40,098 bases of DNA from Octopus bimaculoides. Lineage: Eukaryota. The notes beneath the pieces are model-generated. The model was not told where the DNA came from. It searched no databases and worked only from the letters and a program-made list of their open reading frames with translations. Shown in pieces: positions 2,757 to 36,055 of the stretch. Every line of letters begins with the position of its first letter. Position 1 is the stretch's first letter. Both the position numbers and the translations under genes were made by a program. Location: contig NC_068988.1 of the NCBI RefSeq assembly GCF_001194135.2, forward strand, positions 45,287,550 through 45,327,647, given 5' to 3'.

Positions 2757-3234
2757 TATATTTGTAGTACTTGAGTTTTTGCTGTTCATGGAGATAAGAT
2801 CTGCATCGATCCACAGGAACATGCATTCGAGGTCTCTGCTCATGAAGTCAGTACAAATTCCGTGTGATAGTGTCATGGTGTGTGTATAGATGATGCGTGG
2901 TGGAGGCGCAATGGCCCAGTGGTTAGGGCAGCGGACTCGCGGTCATAGGATCGCGGTTTCGATTCCCAAACTACGTTAAGGGTACACGTGTCTGTGGAGT
3001 GCTCAGCCACTTGCACGTTAATTTTACGAGCAGGCTGTTCCGTTGATCGGATCAACTGGAACCCTCTACGTCGTAAGCGACGGAGTACCAACAATATATT
3101 TGTAGTACTTGAGTTTTTGCTGTTCAAGGAGATAGGATCGGCATCGATCCACAGGAACATGCATTCGAGGTCTCTGCTAATAAAGTCAGTACAAATTCCG
3201 TGTGATAGTGTCATAGTGTGTGTGTAGATGATGC
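2757..3234 (+). repeat. 140-bp direct repeats (2757-2896 and 3095-3234) flanking the SINE; probable long TSD
   Basis: Manual alignment gives 7 mismatches in 140 bp with no indels; the repeats abut both SINE ends. Confidence 0.85.
2897..3094 (+). mobile_element. tRNA-derived SINE, internally deleted variant
   Basis: A box TGGCCCAGTGG and B-box-like GGTTTCGATTCC. Head and tail match the full-length copy at 35604-35991 with about 9 mismatches in 193 bp, but about 190 bp of core is missing. Confidence 0.9.
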
Positions 3235-4045
3235 ATAGTTGATGAAGTTTGGAGAAGAATGGAATGTCATATTATCTGCATAAGAGTTGGTGTTGTAAGC
3301 GGTGATGGCAAGTAGGTTATTGACGAATAAAAAGAAGAGTGTGACGGCAAAAGTGAAGCTTGAAGCACACCAGATTTGATTAAAAGTGATTCAAAAAGAG
3401 ATTCCCGAGCACACGCTGCGATGGTGCGATCTGAGAGATAGACGGAGATCGTAGGTTGGAATTATCGGTTCCAGAATCGTATGCTAAACACGGTCGGAAT
3501 CTTTGCTGATGTTCAAAGCAAGAGTATTGCTTTCACCAAATTTCCATATGGCAAAAGAGCCTGTAGCAGATCTGAAACCAAATTGCTGAAATAGCCGAAT
3601 AAAAGTCACAGCTTAGCCATAATCATTTCATATGATCGGCTGATTAACTGACCAATCAGTATCAAGCCATCATGTGATGCAACATTCTAGAATCTTCTAG
3701 AACCCTTCTAACAAGGCTTATGAATAGACGATTTTTTGGCGCTAAATTTCTGAATGTTGGCGACCATCGCTGTGATAACCACCTTTATATTCAGCCGAGC
3801 AGAAATCGCATGCCAACAGTTGTTTTAAAAACTTTTTCAACCGAGTAGTCAGCAGTCACAGATTGGCCGTCATGAATTTAGTATGATATTTCTCCAATTG
3901 TGACAGCGTAGTCATGAGTCTTTACTAACCAGCCATTTTGTCGTAGCTGTAGAGTTTTCCTTTTTCAATGTGCATAAATCGTTGTTTGTATTCTGATTCA
4001 AAGACCAACATGAAAAATTCTTCGGTTGATAAATCTTCTGTATAA

Positions 4046-10001: not shown

Positions 10002-10269
10002 TCAGGTGAACGTGGTACTTAAGTTGAGGCACCAGAATTTAGCACGGTATTATCAATACAATTTCAAAGTAAAGATATCCAGAGGTAATGCAGTACGATC
10101 GTTTCATGCAACTCCATTTAATTGAACAATCCAGTCATTACATCAATTTAAAATGCAGAGCAATCCTCAGCTGCACAAAGACATAGAATTTAATTAAATT
10201 AGAACAGGTGGACACATTAGTATAATTATACCGAAAATCTCCAAGAAGTTAAGGAGATAGACAAATAAA

Positions 10270-11085
10270 TGTCAGCGGCGAGAAAAAGGCCTATAATCAC
10301 GTGTGATCAACAGGCATAATGGAAGGGGGGAAAGAAAGAAAGAGAGGATGAGAGAAAGAAACAAAGGGAGTGAGGAGAAGAAAGAAGAAAAAAAAACAGT
10401 AGGGAGTGAAAGAAAGACAAAGAGGGGGGAGGATTAAAGGAAAATATAGAGGCTTATAGAGGGATAGAGAAAAAGAAAGAAAACGGGGTGTGAAGTCGCA
10501 GAAATTGTATATAAATGTAAGAACTTACTGTGGACAAGATTGCGTGGCGTTCGATTATAAATGAATAAAAAATGCACATTAAGTATAGGACATCACCAAC
10601 GAGTGGACAGTAAGTTCTTATATTTATATACAATTTCTGTGACTCTACACTATGTTTTCTTTCTGTCTCTCTATCTCCGTATAATCCTCTATATTTTATT
10701 TTTCTCCCTCTCCCCCTTTGATTTTCTTTCATTCCCTAATATCTTTCGTTCCTTCTCCGATCGCCTCAGCCTCTTTGTTTCTTGCCCTCATCCACTCTCT
10801 TGTCCCACTTCCATTCTGTCGATTGATCACATGTGATTATAGGCCTTTTTCTCGAATCTGACTTTTTTGGATGCGACGTTCAACTAGCTGGACGTCATTT
10901 CCATATTCTTTCAACTCTCGACACGTTTTTCTCTGTTACTATTTTCTTCTCTTTAACTTATTCTATAACCTTTCAAAATTTCTCACCTACTCGTAGGTGA
11001 TGTCCTGTACCCAATGTGTATTTTAAAACTTATTTATAATTGAACGCCACGCAGCCTTGTCCACAGTAAGTTCTTACATTTATAC
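10270..11085. repeat. Composite inverted/tandem repeat, Penelope pseudo-LTR-like
   Basis: 10270-10533 is the diverged reverse complement of 10605-10862, and 10508-10603 is the reverse complement of 10990-11085. Confidence 0.75.
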
Positions 11086-17735: not shown

Positions 17736-18670
17736 NNNNNNNNNNNNNNNNNNNNNNNNNNNNNNNNNNNNNNNNNNNNNNNNNNNNNNNNNNNNNNNNN
17801 NNNNNNNNNNNNNNNNNNNNNNNNNNNNNNNNNNNNNNNNNNNNNNNNNNNNNNNNNNNNNNNNNNNNNNNNNNNNNNNNNTATAAAGATGGATAGATAT
17901 ACACGTACATATATGTATATATATACATATATTTTATATACATACATATACACACACACATATATACATATATATATATATACACACACATATATATATA
18001 TGCATATATACATGTGTGTGTAAACATATGTATATATTTATATACGTATGCATGTTTGTATATATATGAACAGTCGTCTATTTATTCCAATAGTGTTTTA
18101 CATAAGATTCTGGACAGTTACAGAGTGGCAACATTTTTGTTGTTTTGTTCTGTTATTGTAGTCTGGTACAAATTTGACAGCAATGAAATAGTTAAGTAAT
18201 ACACATTATCGTCATTATTTATATCTGATATTTCTCCATTCACTATTGTAAATGCTGGTCTCCAACAAATCGACAAGCTTCTATTGTTATGATATAGACT
18301 CTATCAAGAACTTATAATCGGTGTATTTCGGACATGTGGTAACTGCCAAAACCTATAGAGATGGGCGTCAATTGACCCGAGTCTGCGACCCAGACATGAT
18401 TTTTGTACGCAGCTATTTTAGTTTCTTTCTATTACATACATCTACTATGCCGCTATACCATTAGTTGTTTTTGTATTGTTATCATTGTTGTCAATGTCCC
18501 TACCGTCACCATTACCCACATGATCGTCGTCGTTGTCATGATGATGATCATCAATCATTGCATTATTATTGTTGTTTGTCGGGAAGATAAAAAAGAAGAA
18601 AAATGAAAGGCTTTCTTGTGATGATTGTACCAAGCACTACTTTATTATATGTGGCCTTCATTTTATTAAG

Positions 18671-19037
18671 ATTGTGATATTGGAGAGATTTAGTTGTTAT
18701 TTCTAGCAAGTCAGTCGTCTATGTTGTGGTTCCATTCTAACGGGACCATTCGTTGTCCATGCTATTCTCACTGTCACCATAACCCTCATTCTTGTCATCG
18801 ATGTATTCCTTATCATCATCATTGCATTATAGCGCTTAGATTCCGTTCAGCCCTCATCGGCAGGGAAAATAATCGAAAGCCTTCTCCTGATCCTTATCTT
18901 TTCTTTTAAAGCCAGTCTATATACCGAGCACTGCTTTATCAAATGTGTCCATCATTTTATTTAGCTATTACATTGTGATTTCAGAAAGATTTAGTTACTA
19001 TTTCTAGCAAATCAGTCGTCTGTATTGTGGCTCCATT
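18671..19037 (+). repeat. Imperfect 66-bp direct repeat (18671-18736 and 18972-19037)
   Basis: Both read ATTGTGAT...AGATTTAGTT..TATTTCTAGCAA.TCAGTCGTCT..TTGTGG.TCCATT, roughly 80% identical by eye. Confidence 0.7.
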
Positions 19038-19348: not shown

Positions 19349-19608
19349 NNNNNNNNNNNNNNNNNNNNNNNNNNNNNNNNNNNNNNNNNNNNNNNNNNNN
19401 NNNNNNNNNNNNNNNNNNNNNNNNNNNNNNNNNNNNNNNNNNNNNNNNNNNNNNNNNNNNNNNNNNNNNNNNNNNNNNNNNNNNNNNNNNNNNNNNNNNN
19501 NNNNNNNNNNNNNNNNNNNNNNNNNNNNNNNNNNNNNNNNNNNNNNNNNNNNNNNNNNNNNNNNNNNNNNNNNNNNNNNNNNNNNNNNNNNNNNNTATAA
19601 GAAAAAAA

Positions 19609-20430
19609 AGTTAAGGTAGAAAACGTTAAAATAATTTTATCATAAAAAACATTTTAGTACCGGTTTCAGTCATTGAGACTTTTTCAACTCGAAGTATAGA
19701 AAACAATGAAACTTTAGAAAAGTTAAATGAAAACTGTTTTTAAAAGAATATTTGCATAGTGTTCAAATACAAGGAGCATTTTCGTTGTTACTGCTTGTTT
19801 CTGTCTCTCTTGTTTACTCTTGTTAGTTCGAGGTCGTTGTGAATTCTTGGCAGGGAAGAAGAAGAAGAAGAAGAAGAAGAAGAAGAAGAAGAAGAAGAAG
19901 AAGAAGAAGAAGAATGCGGGAGTGGTATGATAGCAGTAGGATGTTAGATGGTCAAGTGCCCTGAAAGTGACTTGTTATGGATGGTAGTAGTGATTGAATT
20001 CTTGAGATATCTCTTTTGAATGTATTGTTTTTTTTAATATTTGCGTGGGTGTTATTGTAAGCAGCAGTGGTAGTAAAGCAAAAAAGGAGGTAGCGGAGAG
20101 GAAGAAGAAGACGAAGAAGAAGGAGCAGAAGAAGACAAAGAACAATAATAAAAGTGGGAGTGGTATGATAGTAGTTAGATGTTAAATGGTCTCTGCCAAG
20201 AATTCACAATGACCTCGAACCAACAAGAGTAAAGAAGAAAGACAGGCAGAAACAAGGAAAATGCCCCCTGTATTTGACTACTATGCGAATATTCTTTTAA
20301 AAAACTTTTCATTTAATTTTTCCAAAATTTAATTGTTTGTCATACTTCGAGTTGAAAAAGTCTCAATGACTGAAACCAGTACTAAAATGATTTTTATGAT
20401 AAAATTACTTTAGCATTTTCTACCTTGACT
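19609..20430. mobile_element. Foldback/MITE-like element with about 240-bp terminal inverted repeats
   Basis: 19609-19853 (AGTTAAGGTAGAAAACG...GAATTCTTGGCAG) is the diverged reverse complement of 20193-20430. The spacer holds (GAA)n at 19856-19913 and a 36-bp direct repeat (19918-19953 and 20156-20191). No TSD seen. Confidence 0.8.
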
Positions 20431-20450
20431 TCTATCTATCTACCTATCTA

Positions 20451-22168: not shown

Positions 22169-24219
22169 ATGAAAACTCAGAGCTATTTTGCTGGCTATGA
22201 TAGAAAGTGTCAGCTGTCCACAGCCAGCAGACTAAAGTGACACTTGCTAACTGATCATGCTTCAAGAACCCTGCGAAGAATTCTTGCTTTTCTAAGTAAT
22301 GTTGATTTTTGTGGGTGTTCTACCTTCACACTTGCACCAATCTCTTTTAGTCATGTTGGTAGTTGAGTGCTGATACTTCTAAGTGCGTTAATTACTGTTG
22401 GTATCACGTCAACTCTCTTCATTGACTACAACCTTCGTATTTCCCATTGCAAATCGTCATAGTTGTTTATTTTTCCTTCTATCACATTGATCCTGTTGTC
22501 ACCAGGGCATGCTATGTCGATTATCATACATGTTCTTTCCTTTTTATTCACCACAACAATGTCCGGTTTCCGATGTCTGGTCAGGCGATCGCACTGGATC
22601 ATTGCATCCCATAAAATTTTGCAGTTCTCATTTTCGGTGACTCCTGGAGTTTGCTCATACCACGTCTTTGCTCTTTGTAGGTCGTGATTTCCACAGAGCT
22701 CCCAATGGATCGTTCTTGCCACATTGTCATGGCATCTTTTGTATTTGCGTTGTGCCAATTTCGGGCATTTGTTAACGATGTGCCATACCGTTCCACCCCT
22801 CTCACCACACATTCTGCACTTGTCGCTATCAGTAGTGTTGCCTGGTCTTGGTATCCATTTTCTGCACTTCTGTTTTTTTTTTTTTGCCATTTTATAATTC
22901 CCGATCCATACCGAAATGATGCTCTCGCCCACGTATTAACTGCTTGGATTTTATTTCATCCAGTCAATTTTGAGTGCAACACCAACCTCAGTCTTCGGAA
23001 ATACTCCATCCTTAGTTGTTCTTTCATTTCCTTTTCCATTATCTCATTGAACTCTAGTACACCAAGCTATTAGTATCCTTCCGTTTCAATGTGTTTAAAT
23101 CATATTTTCGGTAATTTTATTACCGCTAGGGACTGTACCTTGCCTCTTTTTAGGTAAATTATTTTGCACTTCTTGAGTCCAAATTCCATTCTAATGTCAG
23201 TATTAAAACAGTGGACCGTGTTCAGCAAGAAACTCACTCGTGTCTCATCTTTGCCATACAGTTTCAGATCATCCAAGAGTAGGCGGTTGATTGTTTGGGA
23301 TTTTTCTTATAGTTGGTATCTCAGGTTCGTTTACCTAAGTACCAAGGACAGGGGTATCATGCAGAGAGCAAAAAGCAACGGAAATATGCTATCACCCTGG
23401 AAAATTTCTCTACTGATACCCAGAGTGCTCAAGCTTTTTCCGTAAGATGTCAGTTCAGTTTTCCATCCCACCATTCTTCTCTTCATTAAAAAACGTTACA
23501 TTCCTCGCAATTCCAAACAGATCTAAGCACTCATTATCCACGAAAGTGGAATCATATCATAAGCTTTGCAATAGTCAATTCAGGCCATTCCTAGTTTTGT
23601 TCTTCTTCGTTTACAATCTTGCATTACCATTGTATCTATCAATAGTTGGTCTTTGGTACCTCTGTATTTCCTTTTACAGTCGTTTTGTTCCGTCGGTAAT
23701 ATATAGTTCTCATCAAAAATTTATACAGTTCTTTTGCAATTCCCCCTGACAATAACTTACACATTAATGGTGGGGGGGCAGGAAATTGGTCTGTAATTAT
23801 CAGTAGCATTTCAGGCACAACACCATTAGTCCTTTTGTCAACCAGCCCTGGATTTCTTCTTCTCCATTTATCAATGTATTGAATTTTTCTGCAGTCAGTT
23901 TATGGTAACTAGTGGACTTTTTTTTATCCCAACAGGTCCTGCTGCTTTCCAATTGCTTATCATTTTACACATATTTCTGATACTGTCTTCTGTAAAGGAG
24001 AACCCTCTTACTGGGGATAAGAAGTTGTTTGCTTCAGGCTGCAGAGCCATTCAGCTGTAGTATTATGTTGTTCTTGCTTACTCCACATCTTACACCAGAC
24101 ACGTCGACTTTCATCAGCATCACGGACTAATTTTCACGTTTTTTAATTTCATTAATCTCTTGGTAAAATCTTTTTTGATCGGTTCTAAACAATTTGTTTT
24201 ACCGGTATTGCTTAATCCA

Positions 24220-24769: not shown

Positions 24770-25678
24770 ATTTAATTTGCGGTCCATGTGAAGAGCCGTT
24801 TTAACGATGCGTCCTGCCCAGCTCTTCGAAACGCCGGTGTTAAAACGGGGGTAGCTGATGAAGTAGAATGTTCTCTATGTGGCTTGTGTGTTTTCTCGTC
24901 TACGTTTTGTTTGCAATGTCCTGTACCCAGATATGCACCTATACATACAGGTGGATGTCGGTATGCACATACCTGTACGTATATATGCATATACTCATTT
25001 ACTATTTGTTTTTACATGACTGAACGCAGCGTCTCCAATTTGTAAGTTGTTTTCGTAACTTCATATTTTCCGACGCTACTCTATCTCTTTCTGTTTCTCT
25101 TCCTCTATCATTTTTCCCCTCTCGTTCTTCCTCTTTACTACTACGTATCTCGCTTTACCCCTCTCGTTCTTCCTCTGTTACTACTACGTATCTCTTTTTC
25201 CCCCTCGTACTTCCTCTCTTTCTCTTTTCCTCTCGTTGCTCACCTATTCTTCTACTTCCTTCCTTTGTTTGTCCCTCTACCACTCTCTCTCTCTTCCCCT
25301 TATACTGGCATGGTCACATGCTTCCGGTCAATAATCCTTTTCTTCCTTGGCTATCGCCGAGCAAACACGCGAACTACTTCGTCCCTACTTTCAAGTTCGT
25401 GCCTCACAGCGTTCATACACACATAATTTTTCTCGTCTGGCCGTAAAGCCTTTTATGTTTGTTTTCCTGTCTTGTTTTTTGTCCGCCACTACATTCCTCC
25501 ATGGCAAGATTTAATTTGCGGTCCATGGGAAGAGCTGTTTTAACGATGCGTCCTGCCCAGCTCTTCGAAACGCCGGTGTTAAAACGGGGGTAGCTGATGA
25601 AGTAGAATGTTCTCTGTGTGGCTTGTGTGTTTTCTCGTCTCTGTTTTCTTTGCAATGTCCTGTACCCAGATATGCACC
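24770..25678 (+). mobile_element. 170-bp direct repeats (24770-24939 and 25509-25678) around a pyrimidine-rich segment; Penelope pseudo-LTR-like
   Basis: About 6 mismatches in 170 bp; each copy ends ATGTCCTGTACCCAGATATGCACC. The interior has GGTCACATGCTTCCGGTCA and a 42-bp tandem unit (25116, 25158, 25200). Confidence 0.6.
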
Positions 25679-26563
25679 NNNNNNNNNNNNNNNNNNNNNN
25701 NNNNNNNNNNNNNNNNNNNNNNNNNNNNNNNNNNNNNNNNNNNNNNNNNNNNNNNNNNNNNNNNNNNNNNNNNNNNNNNNNNNNNNNNNNNNNNNNNNNN
25801 NNNNNNNNNNNNNNNNNNNNNNNNNNNNNNNNNNNNNNNNNNNNNNNNNNNNNNNNNNNNNNNNNNNNNNNNNNNNNNNNNNNNNNNNNNNNNNNNNNNN
25901 NNNNNNNNNNNNNNNNNNNNNNNNNNNNNNNNNNNNNNNNNNNNNNNNNNNNNNNNNNNNNNNNNNNNNNNNNNNNNNNNNNNNNNNNNNNNNNNNNNNN
26001 NNNNNNNNNNNNNNNNNNNNNNNNNNNNNNNNNNNNNNNNNNNNNNNNNNNNNNNNNNNNNNNNNNNNNNNNNNNNNNNNNNNNNNNNNNNNNNNNNNNN
26101 NNNNNNNNNNNNNNNNNNNNNNNNNNNNNNNNNNNNNNNNNNNNNNNNNNNNNNNNNNNNNNNNNNNNNNNNNNNNNNNNNNNNNNNNNNNNNNNNNNNN
26201 NNNNNNNNNNNNNNNNNNNNNNNNNNNNNNNNNNNNNNNNNNNNNNNNNNNNNNNNNNNNNNNNNNNNNNNNNNNNNNNNNNNNNNNNNNNNNNNNNNNN
26301 NNNNNNNNNNNNNNNNNNNNNNNNNNNNNNNNNNNNNNNNNNNNNNNNNNNNNNNNNNNNNNNNNNNNNNNNNNNNNNNNNNNNNNNNNNNNNNNNNNNN
26401 NNNNNNNNNNNNNNNNNNNNNNNNNNNNNNNNNNNNNNNNNNNNNNNNNNNNNNNNNNNNNNNNNNNNNNNNNNNNNNNNNNNNNNNNNNNNNNNNNNNN
26501 NNNNNNNNNNNNNNNNNNNNNNNNNNNNNNNNNNNNNNNNNNNNNNNNNNNNNNNNNNNNNNN
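25679..26563. other. Assembly gap (largest of nine)
   Basis: N-runs at 15566-15729, 16930-17444, 17736-17881, 19349-19595, 20484-20544, 21739-21838, 25679-26563, 38298-38887 and 39724-39751. Confidence 0.99.
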
Positions 26564-28557: not shown

Positions 28558-28989
28558 GTAAAGAGTTTTAGCTTTTCAAGTCGACACTGGTATTTACTTT
28601 TCAAAATATAAACAGTGCCAAATTCATATATAAGTTAGACAAGCTATAATTTAGGATCTCAAAATCTACTGACGTTACAAAATAGTTAAAAGGAATAAAT
28701 ATGTTCTATTTTTGTGAGAACAACTTTTGTAACACTTTAACAAGAGCATTCCATCATACTCATAATATATCATGATACCTAAGTTACTGATCCTGGAAAT
28801 GTTAAAAAGCAAATCATTACTGGTGAGGATGTGAAGTTTACAAGAATTACTAGACCAGTGACTGTCACCTTCGGCAAGAATTATGTGTAAAATGATATAG
28901 AGAATGTGCATTAAGTATATGCAGATGTCTCTCTTGTGCTGTATATATGTATGTGTGTGTGTGTGAGCGTGTGCTTGTGTGTGTGTATA

Positions 28990-29551
28990 CAGCGTTATTC
29001 AAAAAGAAAGAGTAGATTTCAAATTTATTTCTAAAACAAATGGTAAGAGACACAACACATTCTACATAATTTTTGATAGGGGAAGGTGTAAAGTTTATAG
29101 CTGAACATGATCAATTGAATTAGGCCTTAAATAAAATAATATTTTAATTTTGTTTTAATGTTTCATTTTGTTCATTTTATTTAAAGTTGTTTAATTTTCA
29201 TTTTTGTGTAATCCCTTGGAAAATGGTGACGTCACAAGAAAAGTCTTTTTGTGTGCTGCAGTTTGAGAAATGCGAATCGATTGTGCAAGTGCAACCTGAA
29301 TTTCGCTGCCAATTCAATAAAAATCCACCTCGTCAAAAGCAAATTTACGAACGGCCTAAAAATTTCACAGAAAAAGGTTTCGATGTTTCGATGTTTGTCG
29401 AGCAACACATGGTGCTCATATTGAGTGCATACTACCTTAAAATAAACTTTAAACCTTCCCGTATCAAGAAATATGTAGAATGTGTTTGTGTCTCTTACCG
29501 TTTGTTTTAAAAATAAATTTAAAATCTTCTCTTTCTTTTTGAATAACCCTG
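28990..29551 (+). mobile_element. Non-autonomous Tc1/mariner deletion derivative (562 bp) with about 110-bp TIRs and TA TSD
   Basis: TA|CAGCGTTATTCAAAAAGAAAGAG ... CTCTTTCTTTTTGAATAACCCTG|TA, TIRs 28990-29098 and 29442-29551. The interior encodes MVTSQEKSFCVLQFEKCESIVQVQPEFRCQFNKNPP from ATG 29223, resembling DUF4817-type transposase N-terminal HTH regions. Confidence 0.88.
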
Positions 29552-30974
29552 TATAAGGCAAATGAAAGACAGAAGATAGAATATACGAGAATTTATTATT
29601 AATCCCGACTATTGTTCCAATAAATCTAGCTTCGATCCGTCATGGGTGGGACACTCAACAATTGGTTCAGGAGCATCAAGCAGTGCAAATATGTCTCATC
29701 GGATGATATGTAGACAAAACTCATTAAAATAACAGTTCCGCGATGTATCATCTCATTTCGTAAAAAGGAAAGCTGCAAAACGAAGGAAATGTCTTCATTT
29801 ACATAGAAGATCAAAAGTATAATCACAGATGGAAAAAAGAAACGAACACGCAATACAGCGAGGAAAGTATTAAAAATAACCGTTAACAAATATGGGCGCA
29901 TAAACGCCCCGCGCAAGCTGCATGGTGTGTGTGCACTCGCTCATACAAGCATCCACGAAAGCGTAAGCATACGCACACACATATATACCCACACACATAT
30001 ATGCCTACTCACTAAGAATTGATGTTTCAATTTCTTTCTGTTCATTTTGCTGCCTTTTTTCTTGCATTTTTTAATACTTTAATGTGTGTCCATTCTGTAA
30101 CATGCCTTTTAAAGTCTCACTGCTATTTTTAAAGTTCATTTCTTATATATCCACGAGTGAACGCGTAACATTTATTATTGAATGGTATGCAAGATTCCTC
30201 AGTAAAACCAAGAGAGACTTTAGACCATCCGTTAAAGATGTATGAAAGCCAAAATTGTCCTTGGCGAATTTGAACGCAGAATACAAAAGACAGCACCTAA
30301 CTATTGTAAGAGATTTTGGATGACACTGTACCGATTCTAGAAATCCAAGAGAGTGTTAAAACAAAAAACAACAACAATAACTATTGCATCCCAACAAGCT
30401 ATACATTTTCACCAATAACATCAATATTTATCTTTGAAATTCCCAAAGAATTTTTTGTTATCAAAATATCTTGAAATAGGTATTAATGATTTGGAAGTTT
30501 TACTTTAAATTTATCCATGTATTGGAAGTACTTTCGAAAAGAAAATAAGTGAAATGGGATAACATATAACCGAAAGATATATAACACGGAATCTTTATCA
30601 AACTGGAATATTATCAAATAAAACACTATAAATTAATGTATACACAGAAACTATGAATTGATGTATATGCACACAAACACGCATATAGAATAAATGTATG
30701 ATACGATGTTTTATCTATGTCTGTCTGTCTGTCCGTTAATCTGTCTGTCTATTTGTCTGTCTTTCTGTTTTATATAGTCATTGATTGACCAATGTTTTGT
30801 GAGTAAAATTTGATAAGCTGTATGTATGTGTATGCATGCTTACATGTGTGCCATTTTTTTAATATTAGTATTCTTTCTAGAAGTAGGGAGCTTGTTTCTA
30901 ACAATGAAACCAAAGCTCCGTCACTGAAATTTAGATACGCAGCACCATCAATAATTGTTGCACATTGAATTTTA

Positions 30975-35207: not shown

Positions 35208-36055
35208 TGTAATATACTCATGTAGTGACCCCTGGTGATCAAGCAGGAAAGCAAAACGAAAAAGGGATCTAACGAGATTAATCTCCCTCGAGCTTCTCGA
35301 AAATTCGCGAACATTCTAGAAGCTTCTAATTAATTTCCGGAAGACGTGAAAGTCAGGGACTTCTAATTCATCCCTTATATAAAGGAACACATTCTAATTT
35401 CGCGCCATTCTTGCCTGTCGGTTGCTAGACATGCATTGAGTCACGCCACTCGCATACACACCCGCACGTGCGGATGTTCACCTTATTTGCTTTGAAACAT
35501 GTGATTGCAAAATATGTTCATGTGATGTTACAAGCTTTTCCTTCAATTAACCTCATATGTTAACGCAATACATCCAGTAATAAATATGTTATGACTTATT
35601 ACATATGGTTGGCACTCCGTAGGTTACGACGACGAGGGTTCCAGTTGATTCGATCAACGGAACAGCCTGCTCGTGAAATTAACGTGCAAGTGGCTGAGCA
35701 CTCCACAGACACGTGTACCCTTGACGTAGTTTTCGGGGGAGATTCAGCGTGACACAGAGTGTGACAAGGCTGGCCCTTTGAAATACAGGTACAACAGAAA
35801 CAGGAAGTAAGAGTGAAAGAAAGTTGTGGTGGAAGAGTACAGCAGGGTTCGCCACCATCCCCTGCCAGAGCCTCGTGGAGCTTTCGGTATTTTCGCTCAA
35901 TAAACACTCACAACGCCCGGTCTGGGAATCGAAACCGCGATCCTACGACCGCGAGTCCGCTGCCCTAACCACTGGGCCATTGCGCCTCCACGACTTATTA
36001 CAAACGTCTCGCAAATTCTCATTTTCTTGCTGTTTACGAACAAGATGGTGACCCC
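35208..36055 (+). mobile_element. LTR-like relic with candidate tRNA-Trp primer-binding site, interrupted by a SINE
   Basis: TGTAATA start, TATATAAA at 35376, AATAAA at 35579. Possible ends TATTACA (35603/36002) or GAACA (36042), followed by TGGTGACCCC (36046-36055), complementary to the tRNA-Trp 3' end GGGGUCACCA. Confidence 0.5.
35604..35991 (-). mobile_element. Full-length tRNA-derived SINE (388 bp) with 11-bp TSD GACTTATTACA
   Basis: TSD copies at 35593-35603 and 35992-36002; A box TGGCCCAGTGG and B-box-like GGTTTCGATTCC on the minus strand. Confidence 0.92.

Follow-up and report, generated by a model that had tools for sequence, protein, structure and literature searches.

In the genome of Octopus bimaculoides, a 198-nt SINE lies between two direct repeats of 140 nt, which duplicate part of what is likely a decayed LINE. 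We propose that this arrangement is probably the product of one genuine target-primed insertion of the SINE into the old, dead LINE, in which the second-strand break fell about 140 bp away from the first nick. The resulting target-site duplication (TSD), of 138-140 bp, is better regarded as an outlier than as a property of the SINE family. The window analyzed here is the whole 40,098-nt stretch of O. bimaculoides contig NC_068988.1 (45,287,550-45,327,647 of the forward strand), and all positions given below are those of the window. Counting against this reading are that only one such long-TSD event was seen and that the scaffold of the window is a draft with gaps.

A repeat scan of the window returned one direct-repeat pair at this site, 2757-2904 and 3095-3242 (148 nt, 93%), with an E value of about 1e-58 in self-BLAST. 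Base-by-base comparison delimits a clean repeat, 2757-2896 versus 3095-3234, with 7 mismatches and no indels over 140 nt, exactly as the original prediction had described it around the 198-bp SINE. The left (5') copy, 2757-2896, ends in ...GATGATGC and adjoins the SINE head, and the right (3') copy, 3095-3234, adjoins the SINE tail. At the 5' junction, the left repeat runs to 2896 and is followed by GTG and then by GTGGAGGCG..., the corresponding sequence of the sibling SINE described below being GTC-GTGGAGGCG. Both SINE copies open with GT(G/C)GTGGAGG and, if they truly begin there, the element at 2897 may start without any filler; accordingly, the homology to the sibling head sets in at either 2897 or 2900. 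At the 3' junction, the homology to the sibling tail extends up to 3094-3096, and the SINE end ...CAATA passes into the start of the right repeat, TATATTTG, at 3095 with a 2-nt ambiguity. Depending on how the 2-3 nt of junction microhomology are assigned, the TSD measures 138-140 bp. The inner ends of the repeats coincide with the 5' and 3' termini of the SINE within 0-3 nt, and these termini are set independently by the sibling's own TSD. Because both inner ends adjoin the SINE termini exactly, as target-primed insertion predicts, we concur with the earlier identification of the 140-nt repeats as a TSD. A base-level reading of the locus uncovered no extra short TSD nested in the 140-nt repeats, and no N gaps occur within 12 kb of the SINE site at 2897. 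The open reading frame at 2873-3214 on the minus strand was looked up for independent confirmation of the junctions, and no record of it was found.

The sibling is a full-length, 388-nt SINE at 35604-35991 on the minus strand, and a perfect 11-bp repeat, TGTAATAAGTC, stands on either side of it and fixes the termini of the SINE family independently of the long repeats. The 3'-side copy of its TSD occupies 35593-35603 (reading TGTAATAAGTC on the minus strand), and the 5'-side copy occupies 35992-36002 on the same strand, where the last 3 nt (GTC) are possibly the first 3 nt of the SINE. In the latter case the TSD would comprise 8 bp plus 3 nt of microhomology; hence, the ordinary 11-bp TSD earlier ascribed to the sibling at 35604 is correct as to the perfect repeat, but its length is better given as 8-11 bp by junction assignment. 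The inferred top-strand (second) break falls at C|ATA in both insertions, GATGC|ATAG and AAGTC|ATAA (2896/2897 and 3234/3235 compared with 35603/35604 and 36002/36003), which, with n=2, is maybe due to chance.

The SINE at 2897-3094 (plus strand) starts with GTGGTGGAGGCG, ends with ...ACCAACAA(TA), and matches the sibling at 96% in its head and 93% in its tail. The sibling is its sole other match in the window, where sensitive blastn and nhmmer searches recovered no further, more diverged copies; the flanks of the two copies are unrelated, and each copy has direct repeats of its own. This bears out the kinship of the two elements that had been noted before, but the sibling is on the opposite strand and is 388 nt long rather than about 198 nt, so that the copy at 2897 is an internally deleted derivative of a family of about 388 nt. 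It is without approximately 190 central nt relative to the sibling, with the junction near 2968/2969 (...GATTCCCA|AACTACG..., 2967-2970, plus strand), and in the sibling a short CCC(N)GA-like microhomology is present on either side of the missing portion. The long, 388-nt form is apparently the normal form of the family because segments of O. bimaculoides proteins that are derived from it include residues of the central region. The internal deletion means that either the event itself or the later history of this copy was not entirely canonical.

The element shows the layout of a tRNA-type (type 2) Pol III promoter near its 5' end, with A and B-like boxes at a tRNA-like spacing. The A box, TGGCCCAGTGG (2912-2922, plus strand), fits the Pol III A-box consensus TRGCNNAGTGG perfectly, and the B-box-like motif, GGTTTCGATTCC (2955-2966, plus strand), is one position off GGTTCGANNCC; the two are 43 nt apart, start to start, and the same motifs recur at the same positions in the sibling. 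ARAGORN detected no tRNA in the window, and Rfam returned no match at the gathering score and none at an E value of 10 or less on the sibling; therefore, the label “tRNA-derived” is taken here from the promoter boxes by themselves. Toward the other end, a stem-loop is predicted at 3037-3062 (plus strand; GTTCCGTTGATCGGATCAACTGGAAC), at z-scores of only -1.5 to -1.9. This predicted hairpin, GTTCCGTTGATCGRATCAACTGGAAC, is common to both SINE copies with a single difference, which lies in the loop, making it a candidate for the hairpin recognized by the reverse transcriptase of a partner LINE. The two copies end in ...GCCAACCATA and ...ACCAACAATA (both ...CCAACMATA) and have no poly(A), no microsatellite, and no repeated unit. 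An affinity to the CORE-SINEs was also considered and dropped; against a MIR consensus, the score was 20 versus a shuffle maximum of 25, and the CORE domain showed no likeness beyond the A-box region.

Five SINE frames, concatenated and used in a protein match search, showed that three predicted O. bimaculoides proteins contain antisense segments of the SINE, at 85-94% amino acid identity. Because two copies are present in the window and segments are found in these three proteins, the SINE is a real dispersed family. The proteins (UniRef entries P0002, P0003, and P0004; an MFS transporter, an LDL-receptor-class-A protein, and a PiggyBac-derived protein) each contain 40-80 residues from the antisense SINE strand (...ALRRLRRRGFQLIRSTEQPAREINVQVAEHSTDTCTLNVV...), which are either exonised SINEs or artefacts of the gene models. 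When one open SINE frame was searched against a protein database, no match was found, and the SINE tail translated in all frames matched SINE-containing octopus proteins only and no LINE open reading frame. Exact SINE patterns had no match in metagenome and viral contigs, and a literature search for SINE strings in published text was likewise negative.

The sequence into which the SINE inserted is likely a decayed, 5'-truncated non-LTR retrotransposon with a reverse transcriptase (RT) region, spanning from about 3739 to about 2448 on the minus strand in three shifting frames, so that the SINE is antisense to it. The characteristic motifs follow in order, namely ...NRLFISL..., FGFRSATGS (3582-3556), ALNISKDSDRV (3519-3487), ...LFFLFVNNL..., and YADNMTF (3282-3262), and the DLECMFLWIDADPISLNSKNS that comes after YADNMTF is encoded in the duplicated 140 nt, just C-terminal of the YADD box. 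In BLASTP, the translation has 36/104 identities to P0001, an RVT_1 protein, across the SKxFDxVxH and YADD boxes (E of 4e-11 in the pairwise comparison, only 6.6e-3 database-wide). Pfam and PDB sequence searches of the host translation gave no match, and since Pfam does not detect the host, its assignment as an RT draws on the motif order and the single match to P0001. The earlier statement that the repeats duplicate a LINE RT frame is thus likely correct, with the qualification that this frame is on the minus strand, heavily decayed, and negative in Pfam. Self-comparison of the window revealed no other copies of the host LINE, and the database search yielded the one weak RT match only. A second, different decayed LINE is present at about 22426-24200 on the minus strand, where Pfam detects RVT_1 (E of 2.8e-8). 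Its RT region reads ...IDYCKAYDMIPLSWI..., ...IFQGDSIFPLLF..., and ...LLLDDLKLY..., and is followed by an intact 168-aa open reading frame (22426-22932, minus strand) with a Cys/His-rich stretch, CRMCGERGGTVWHIVNKCPKL; no record of this reading frame was found.

Two features of the repeats bear on the origin of the duplication. Relative to the frame of YADD upstream, both 140-nt copies are disrupted in the same way, which indicates that the LINE had already decayed when the duplication arose. Further, a length of 140 nt is not divisible by 3, so that the duplication would have broken the reading frame of an active LINE master, and it accordingly arose in this copy. The repeats have diverged from each other at 7/140 positions (5.0%) and the two SINEs at 11/199 aligned positions (5.5%), a comparison of low power that is compatible with the duplication having arisen at insertion. 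The flank divergence of about 5% is thus indeed near to the SINE-to-SINE value, as anticipated, with the SINE count amended from 9/193 to 11/199.

Following the general model of target-primed reverse transcription, we infer an order of nicks in which the endonuclease of a partner LINE would first have cut the bottom strand at about 2756/2757 in a target that is presumed to have held the 140 nt in single copy (un-duplicated top strand ...GCTG|TATATTTG). The freed 3'-OH would then have primed reverse transcription from the ...CAAUA 3' end of the SINE RNA, possibly helped by 2-3 nt of microhomology (TA/TAT). Subsequently, the top strand would have been broken about 140 bp downstream, after ...GATGATGC, as against the usual distance of about 10 bp, and its 3' end could have primed second-strand synthesis at the SINE 5' end (GTGGTGGAGG). 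Fill-in of the two 140-nt single-stranded stretches would finally have duplicated the target. The distal break could stem from a second endonuclease cut or, equally, from an unrelated nick, for instance one left during replication or repair, which is what has been suggested for L1.

An alternative, favored by the original prediction, is that the long TSD is the characteristic product of an RTE-clade partner LINE making widely staggered second-strand nicks, in which case many copies with very long TSDs are expected. Several observations are congenial to it: recently active RTE-clade LINEs are known from octopus genomes (PMC9115989), and a SINE without poly(A) and with a conserved predicted 3' hairpin fits a LINE that recognizes a specific 3' tail. 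Both TSDs also start with T and have TTT 11-16 nt upstream (at -11 to -13 for the 8-11-bp TSD of the sibling and at -14 to -16 for the 138-140-bp TSD of the copy at 2897; n=2), which loosely resembles the signature of RTE-related SINEs, in which the TSD opens with a T and a T stretch precedes it by about 10 nt (PMC6007223). However, the only other copy has a TSD of 8-11 bp, and this short value is the one that agrees with the clade. In the RTE clade, most TSDs measure 7-15 bp, the mode being 10-12 bp, according to PMC6007223, which cites Ichiyanagi and Okada 2008 and adds data of its own; most animal RTEs and their SINEs have TSDs of not more than 13 bp (PMC6007223), and individual examples include schistosome SR3 with 10-12 bp (PMC1291365) and HzRTE-1 with 10 bp (PMC1852546). 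Moreover, RTE-related SINEs typically terminate in microsatellite-like or T-rich repeats (PMC6007223), and the 3' UTR of the octopus RTE-2_OV is dominated by a microsatellite (PMC9115989), but a repeat of either kind is absent from the extreme 3' end of both SINE copies. The search of the window for a LINE sharing the SINE 3' tail, the partner that this alternative calls for, came back empty; the second LINE, at about 22.4-24.2 kb, does not resemble the tail. Finally, TSDs of more than 100 bp are also produced with L1 (PMC5223499) and with R9 and Dualen (PMC9977147), so their length does not identify a clade. We accordingly consider an RTE-specific mode of cleavage unlikely as the source of this TSD.

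It is also conceivable, though here the chances appear slim, that the SINE family or its partner LINE yields nucleosome-sized TSDs of about 140 bp at appreciable frequency. Such a tendency could arise if the break were set by chromatin or by lagging-strand nicks and not by the endonuclease. With one long and one ordinary TSD at hand (n=2), no family-wide property can be inferred. Were TSDs of about 140 bp indeed frequent, the SINE family would constitute a natural system for studying the choice of second-strand cleavage in target-primed reverse transcription.

The remaining alternatives dispense with a long TSD altogether, and both are less parsimonious than a TSD. The first is that the locus is a recombinant, or an assembly chimaera, of two LINE copies of the same family joined through a shared SINE. 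In one of these copies the SINE would directly follow the 140-nt segment and in the other directly precede it, and the join would stem from an unequal or ectopic crossover in vivo or from a misjoin that the repeat induced in a short-read assembly. This would give an identical [A]-SINE-[A] anatomy, and the draft state of the scaffold and the presence of another long direct repeat (24770-24939 and 25509-25678) adjoining an N gap lend it some plausibility. Against it, it needs two independent insertions, in the same orientation and 140 bp apart, of the same deleted 198-nt variant into two LINE copies, and the join must in addition keep the LINE colinear; further, no second copy of the host LINE is present in the window, and the SINE locus is far from any gap. 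We therefore judge a chimaera to be very unlikely.

As for the state of the assembly in general, the window is a gapped draft of the short-read type, with N runs (scaffold gaps) at about 15.6k, 16.9-17.5k, 17.8k, 19.3k, 25.68-26.6k, and 38.3-38.9k, usually beside (TA)n/(CA)n microsatellites. The two copies of the 170-nt direct repeat at 24770-24939 and 25509-25678 are 96.5% identical and 739 nt apart, and the second meets an N gap at 25679; they are either copies of a repeat family with a contig break in the second or an artefact of the scaffold and its gap. The window also contains two inverted-repeat pairs, 19608-19856 with 20190-20431 (249 nt, 87%) and 28986-29098 with 29442-29555 (114 nt, 91%), and a 600-nt self-complementary stretch (10267-10866, 74.5%). 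Other short repeats in opposite orientations, or foldback/MITE-like elements, may account for them.

The other alternative, which strikes us as the most improbable, is that the duplication is not of retropositional origin, with the SINE having landed at the junction of a pre-existing 140-nt tandem duplication or having been copied into a duplication junction by template-switching repair. A tandem-like duplication does occur elsewhere in the window (18628-18736 and 18922-19037, 79% identity), and template switching could produce the internal deletion of the SINE with its short junction microhomology. However, a chance landing within 0-3 nt of the junction has a probability of only about 1 in 100 within the 140-nt segment alone, and such an insertion is expected to have a short TSD of its own, which is not present. 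A DNA-templated insertion, for its part, should not be bounded so exactly by the two ends of the SINE transcript. The tandem-like duplication at 18628 is older, with a period of about 294 nt and no recognizable retroposon between its copies. An artefact of allelic or haplotype duplication was rejected as the main reading since actual reads are required to account for either of the novel junctions and the nearest gap is a long way off.

Returning to the target-primed insertion that we favor, its significance lies in the fact that TSD length is the only fossil record of second-strand cleavage, the least understood step of LINE and SINE integration. A lone long-TSD event beside an ordinary sibling tells little about the enzyme, and the long TSD would be informative in this regard only if a second mode of long TSDs exists genome-wide in the SINE family. 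There is also a practical side, in that 140-nt duplications of host sequence can mislead repeat annotators and TSD-finding scripts. The non-LTR element RTE-1 of C. elegans, that of Youngman et al. 1996, was named in the original prediction as the classic case of very long TSDs. In PMC6007223 it was analyzed only within a TSD search range of 10-49 bp, and 49 bp is the maximum TSD length in the scripts of both PMC6007223 and PMC13295347.

Among the known systems, the SINEs mobilized by RTE elements (Bov-tA, Sauria SINE, AfroSINE, and the plant Au-like SINEs; PMC6007223 and PMC13295347) resemble the octopus SINE in that they lack poly(A) and combine a Pol III promoter head with a 3' hairpin like the one predicted here. 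At 8-11 bp, the TSD of the sibling is within the range of RTE LINEs and SINEs, and its T start and upstream T run loosely resemble theirs. The octopus SINE differs from them in being without a microsatellite-like 3' terminus, in having no LINE with its tail in the window, and in the 140-bp TSD, which is far beyond the reported 7-15 bp. Closer to hand taxonomically are the octopus tRNA-derived SINE families OK, OR1, and OR2 (Ohshima and Okada 1994, as cited in PMC4824008 and PMC4758252), which are likened to the present element by description only: they too are SINEs of octopuses and have internal Pol III promoters of the tRNA type. The R9 LINEs of rotifers, with a 126-bp TSD, and Dualen-4b_cRei of Chlamydomonas, with longer ones (both as cited in PMC9977147), provide a parallel in that they are non-LTR insertions flanked by TSDs of about 100 bp or more. 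By that account, however, their long TSDs are regular, family-wide, and tied to a site-specific or dual endonuclease, whereas the octopus element is a non-autonomous SINE whose only sibling has a TSD of 8-11 bp.

A likeness in kind is offered by human L1, in which an otherwise ordinary target-primed insertion has its second break at least 100 bp from the first nick in a minority of events beside short TSDs. TSDs of more than 100 bp are given for up to 10% of events in HeLa cells and for 57-91% of events in NER-deficient cells (PMC5223499, citing Gilbert 2002/2005 and Symer 2002), and an unrelated distal nick, or an end from replication or repair, has been proposed as the second break (PMC5223499). 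The two systems differ in that L1 has poly(A) and TTTT/AA targets, whereas the octopus SINE is without an A tail and its TSDs start with TAT... or TGT...; likewise, the L1 events arose de novo in culture, whereas the octopus insertion is germline-fixed and about 5% diverged. On this reading, the octopus insertion adds a clean case to an outcome of target-primed insertion that is rare but already known, and a germline-fixed 140-bp TSD at a non-poly(A) cephalopod SINE indicates that second breaks at so great a distance are not confined to mammalian L1 in cultured cells.
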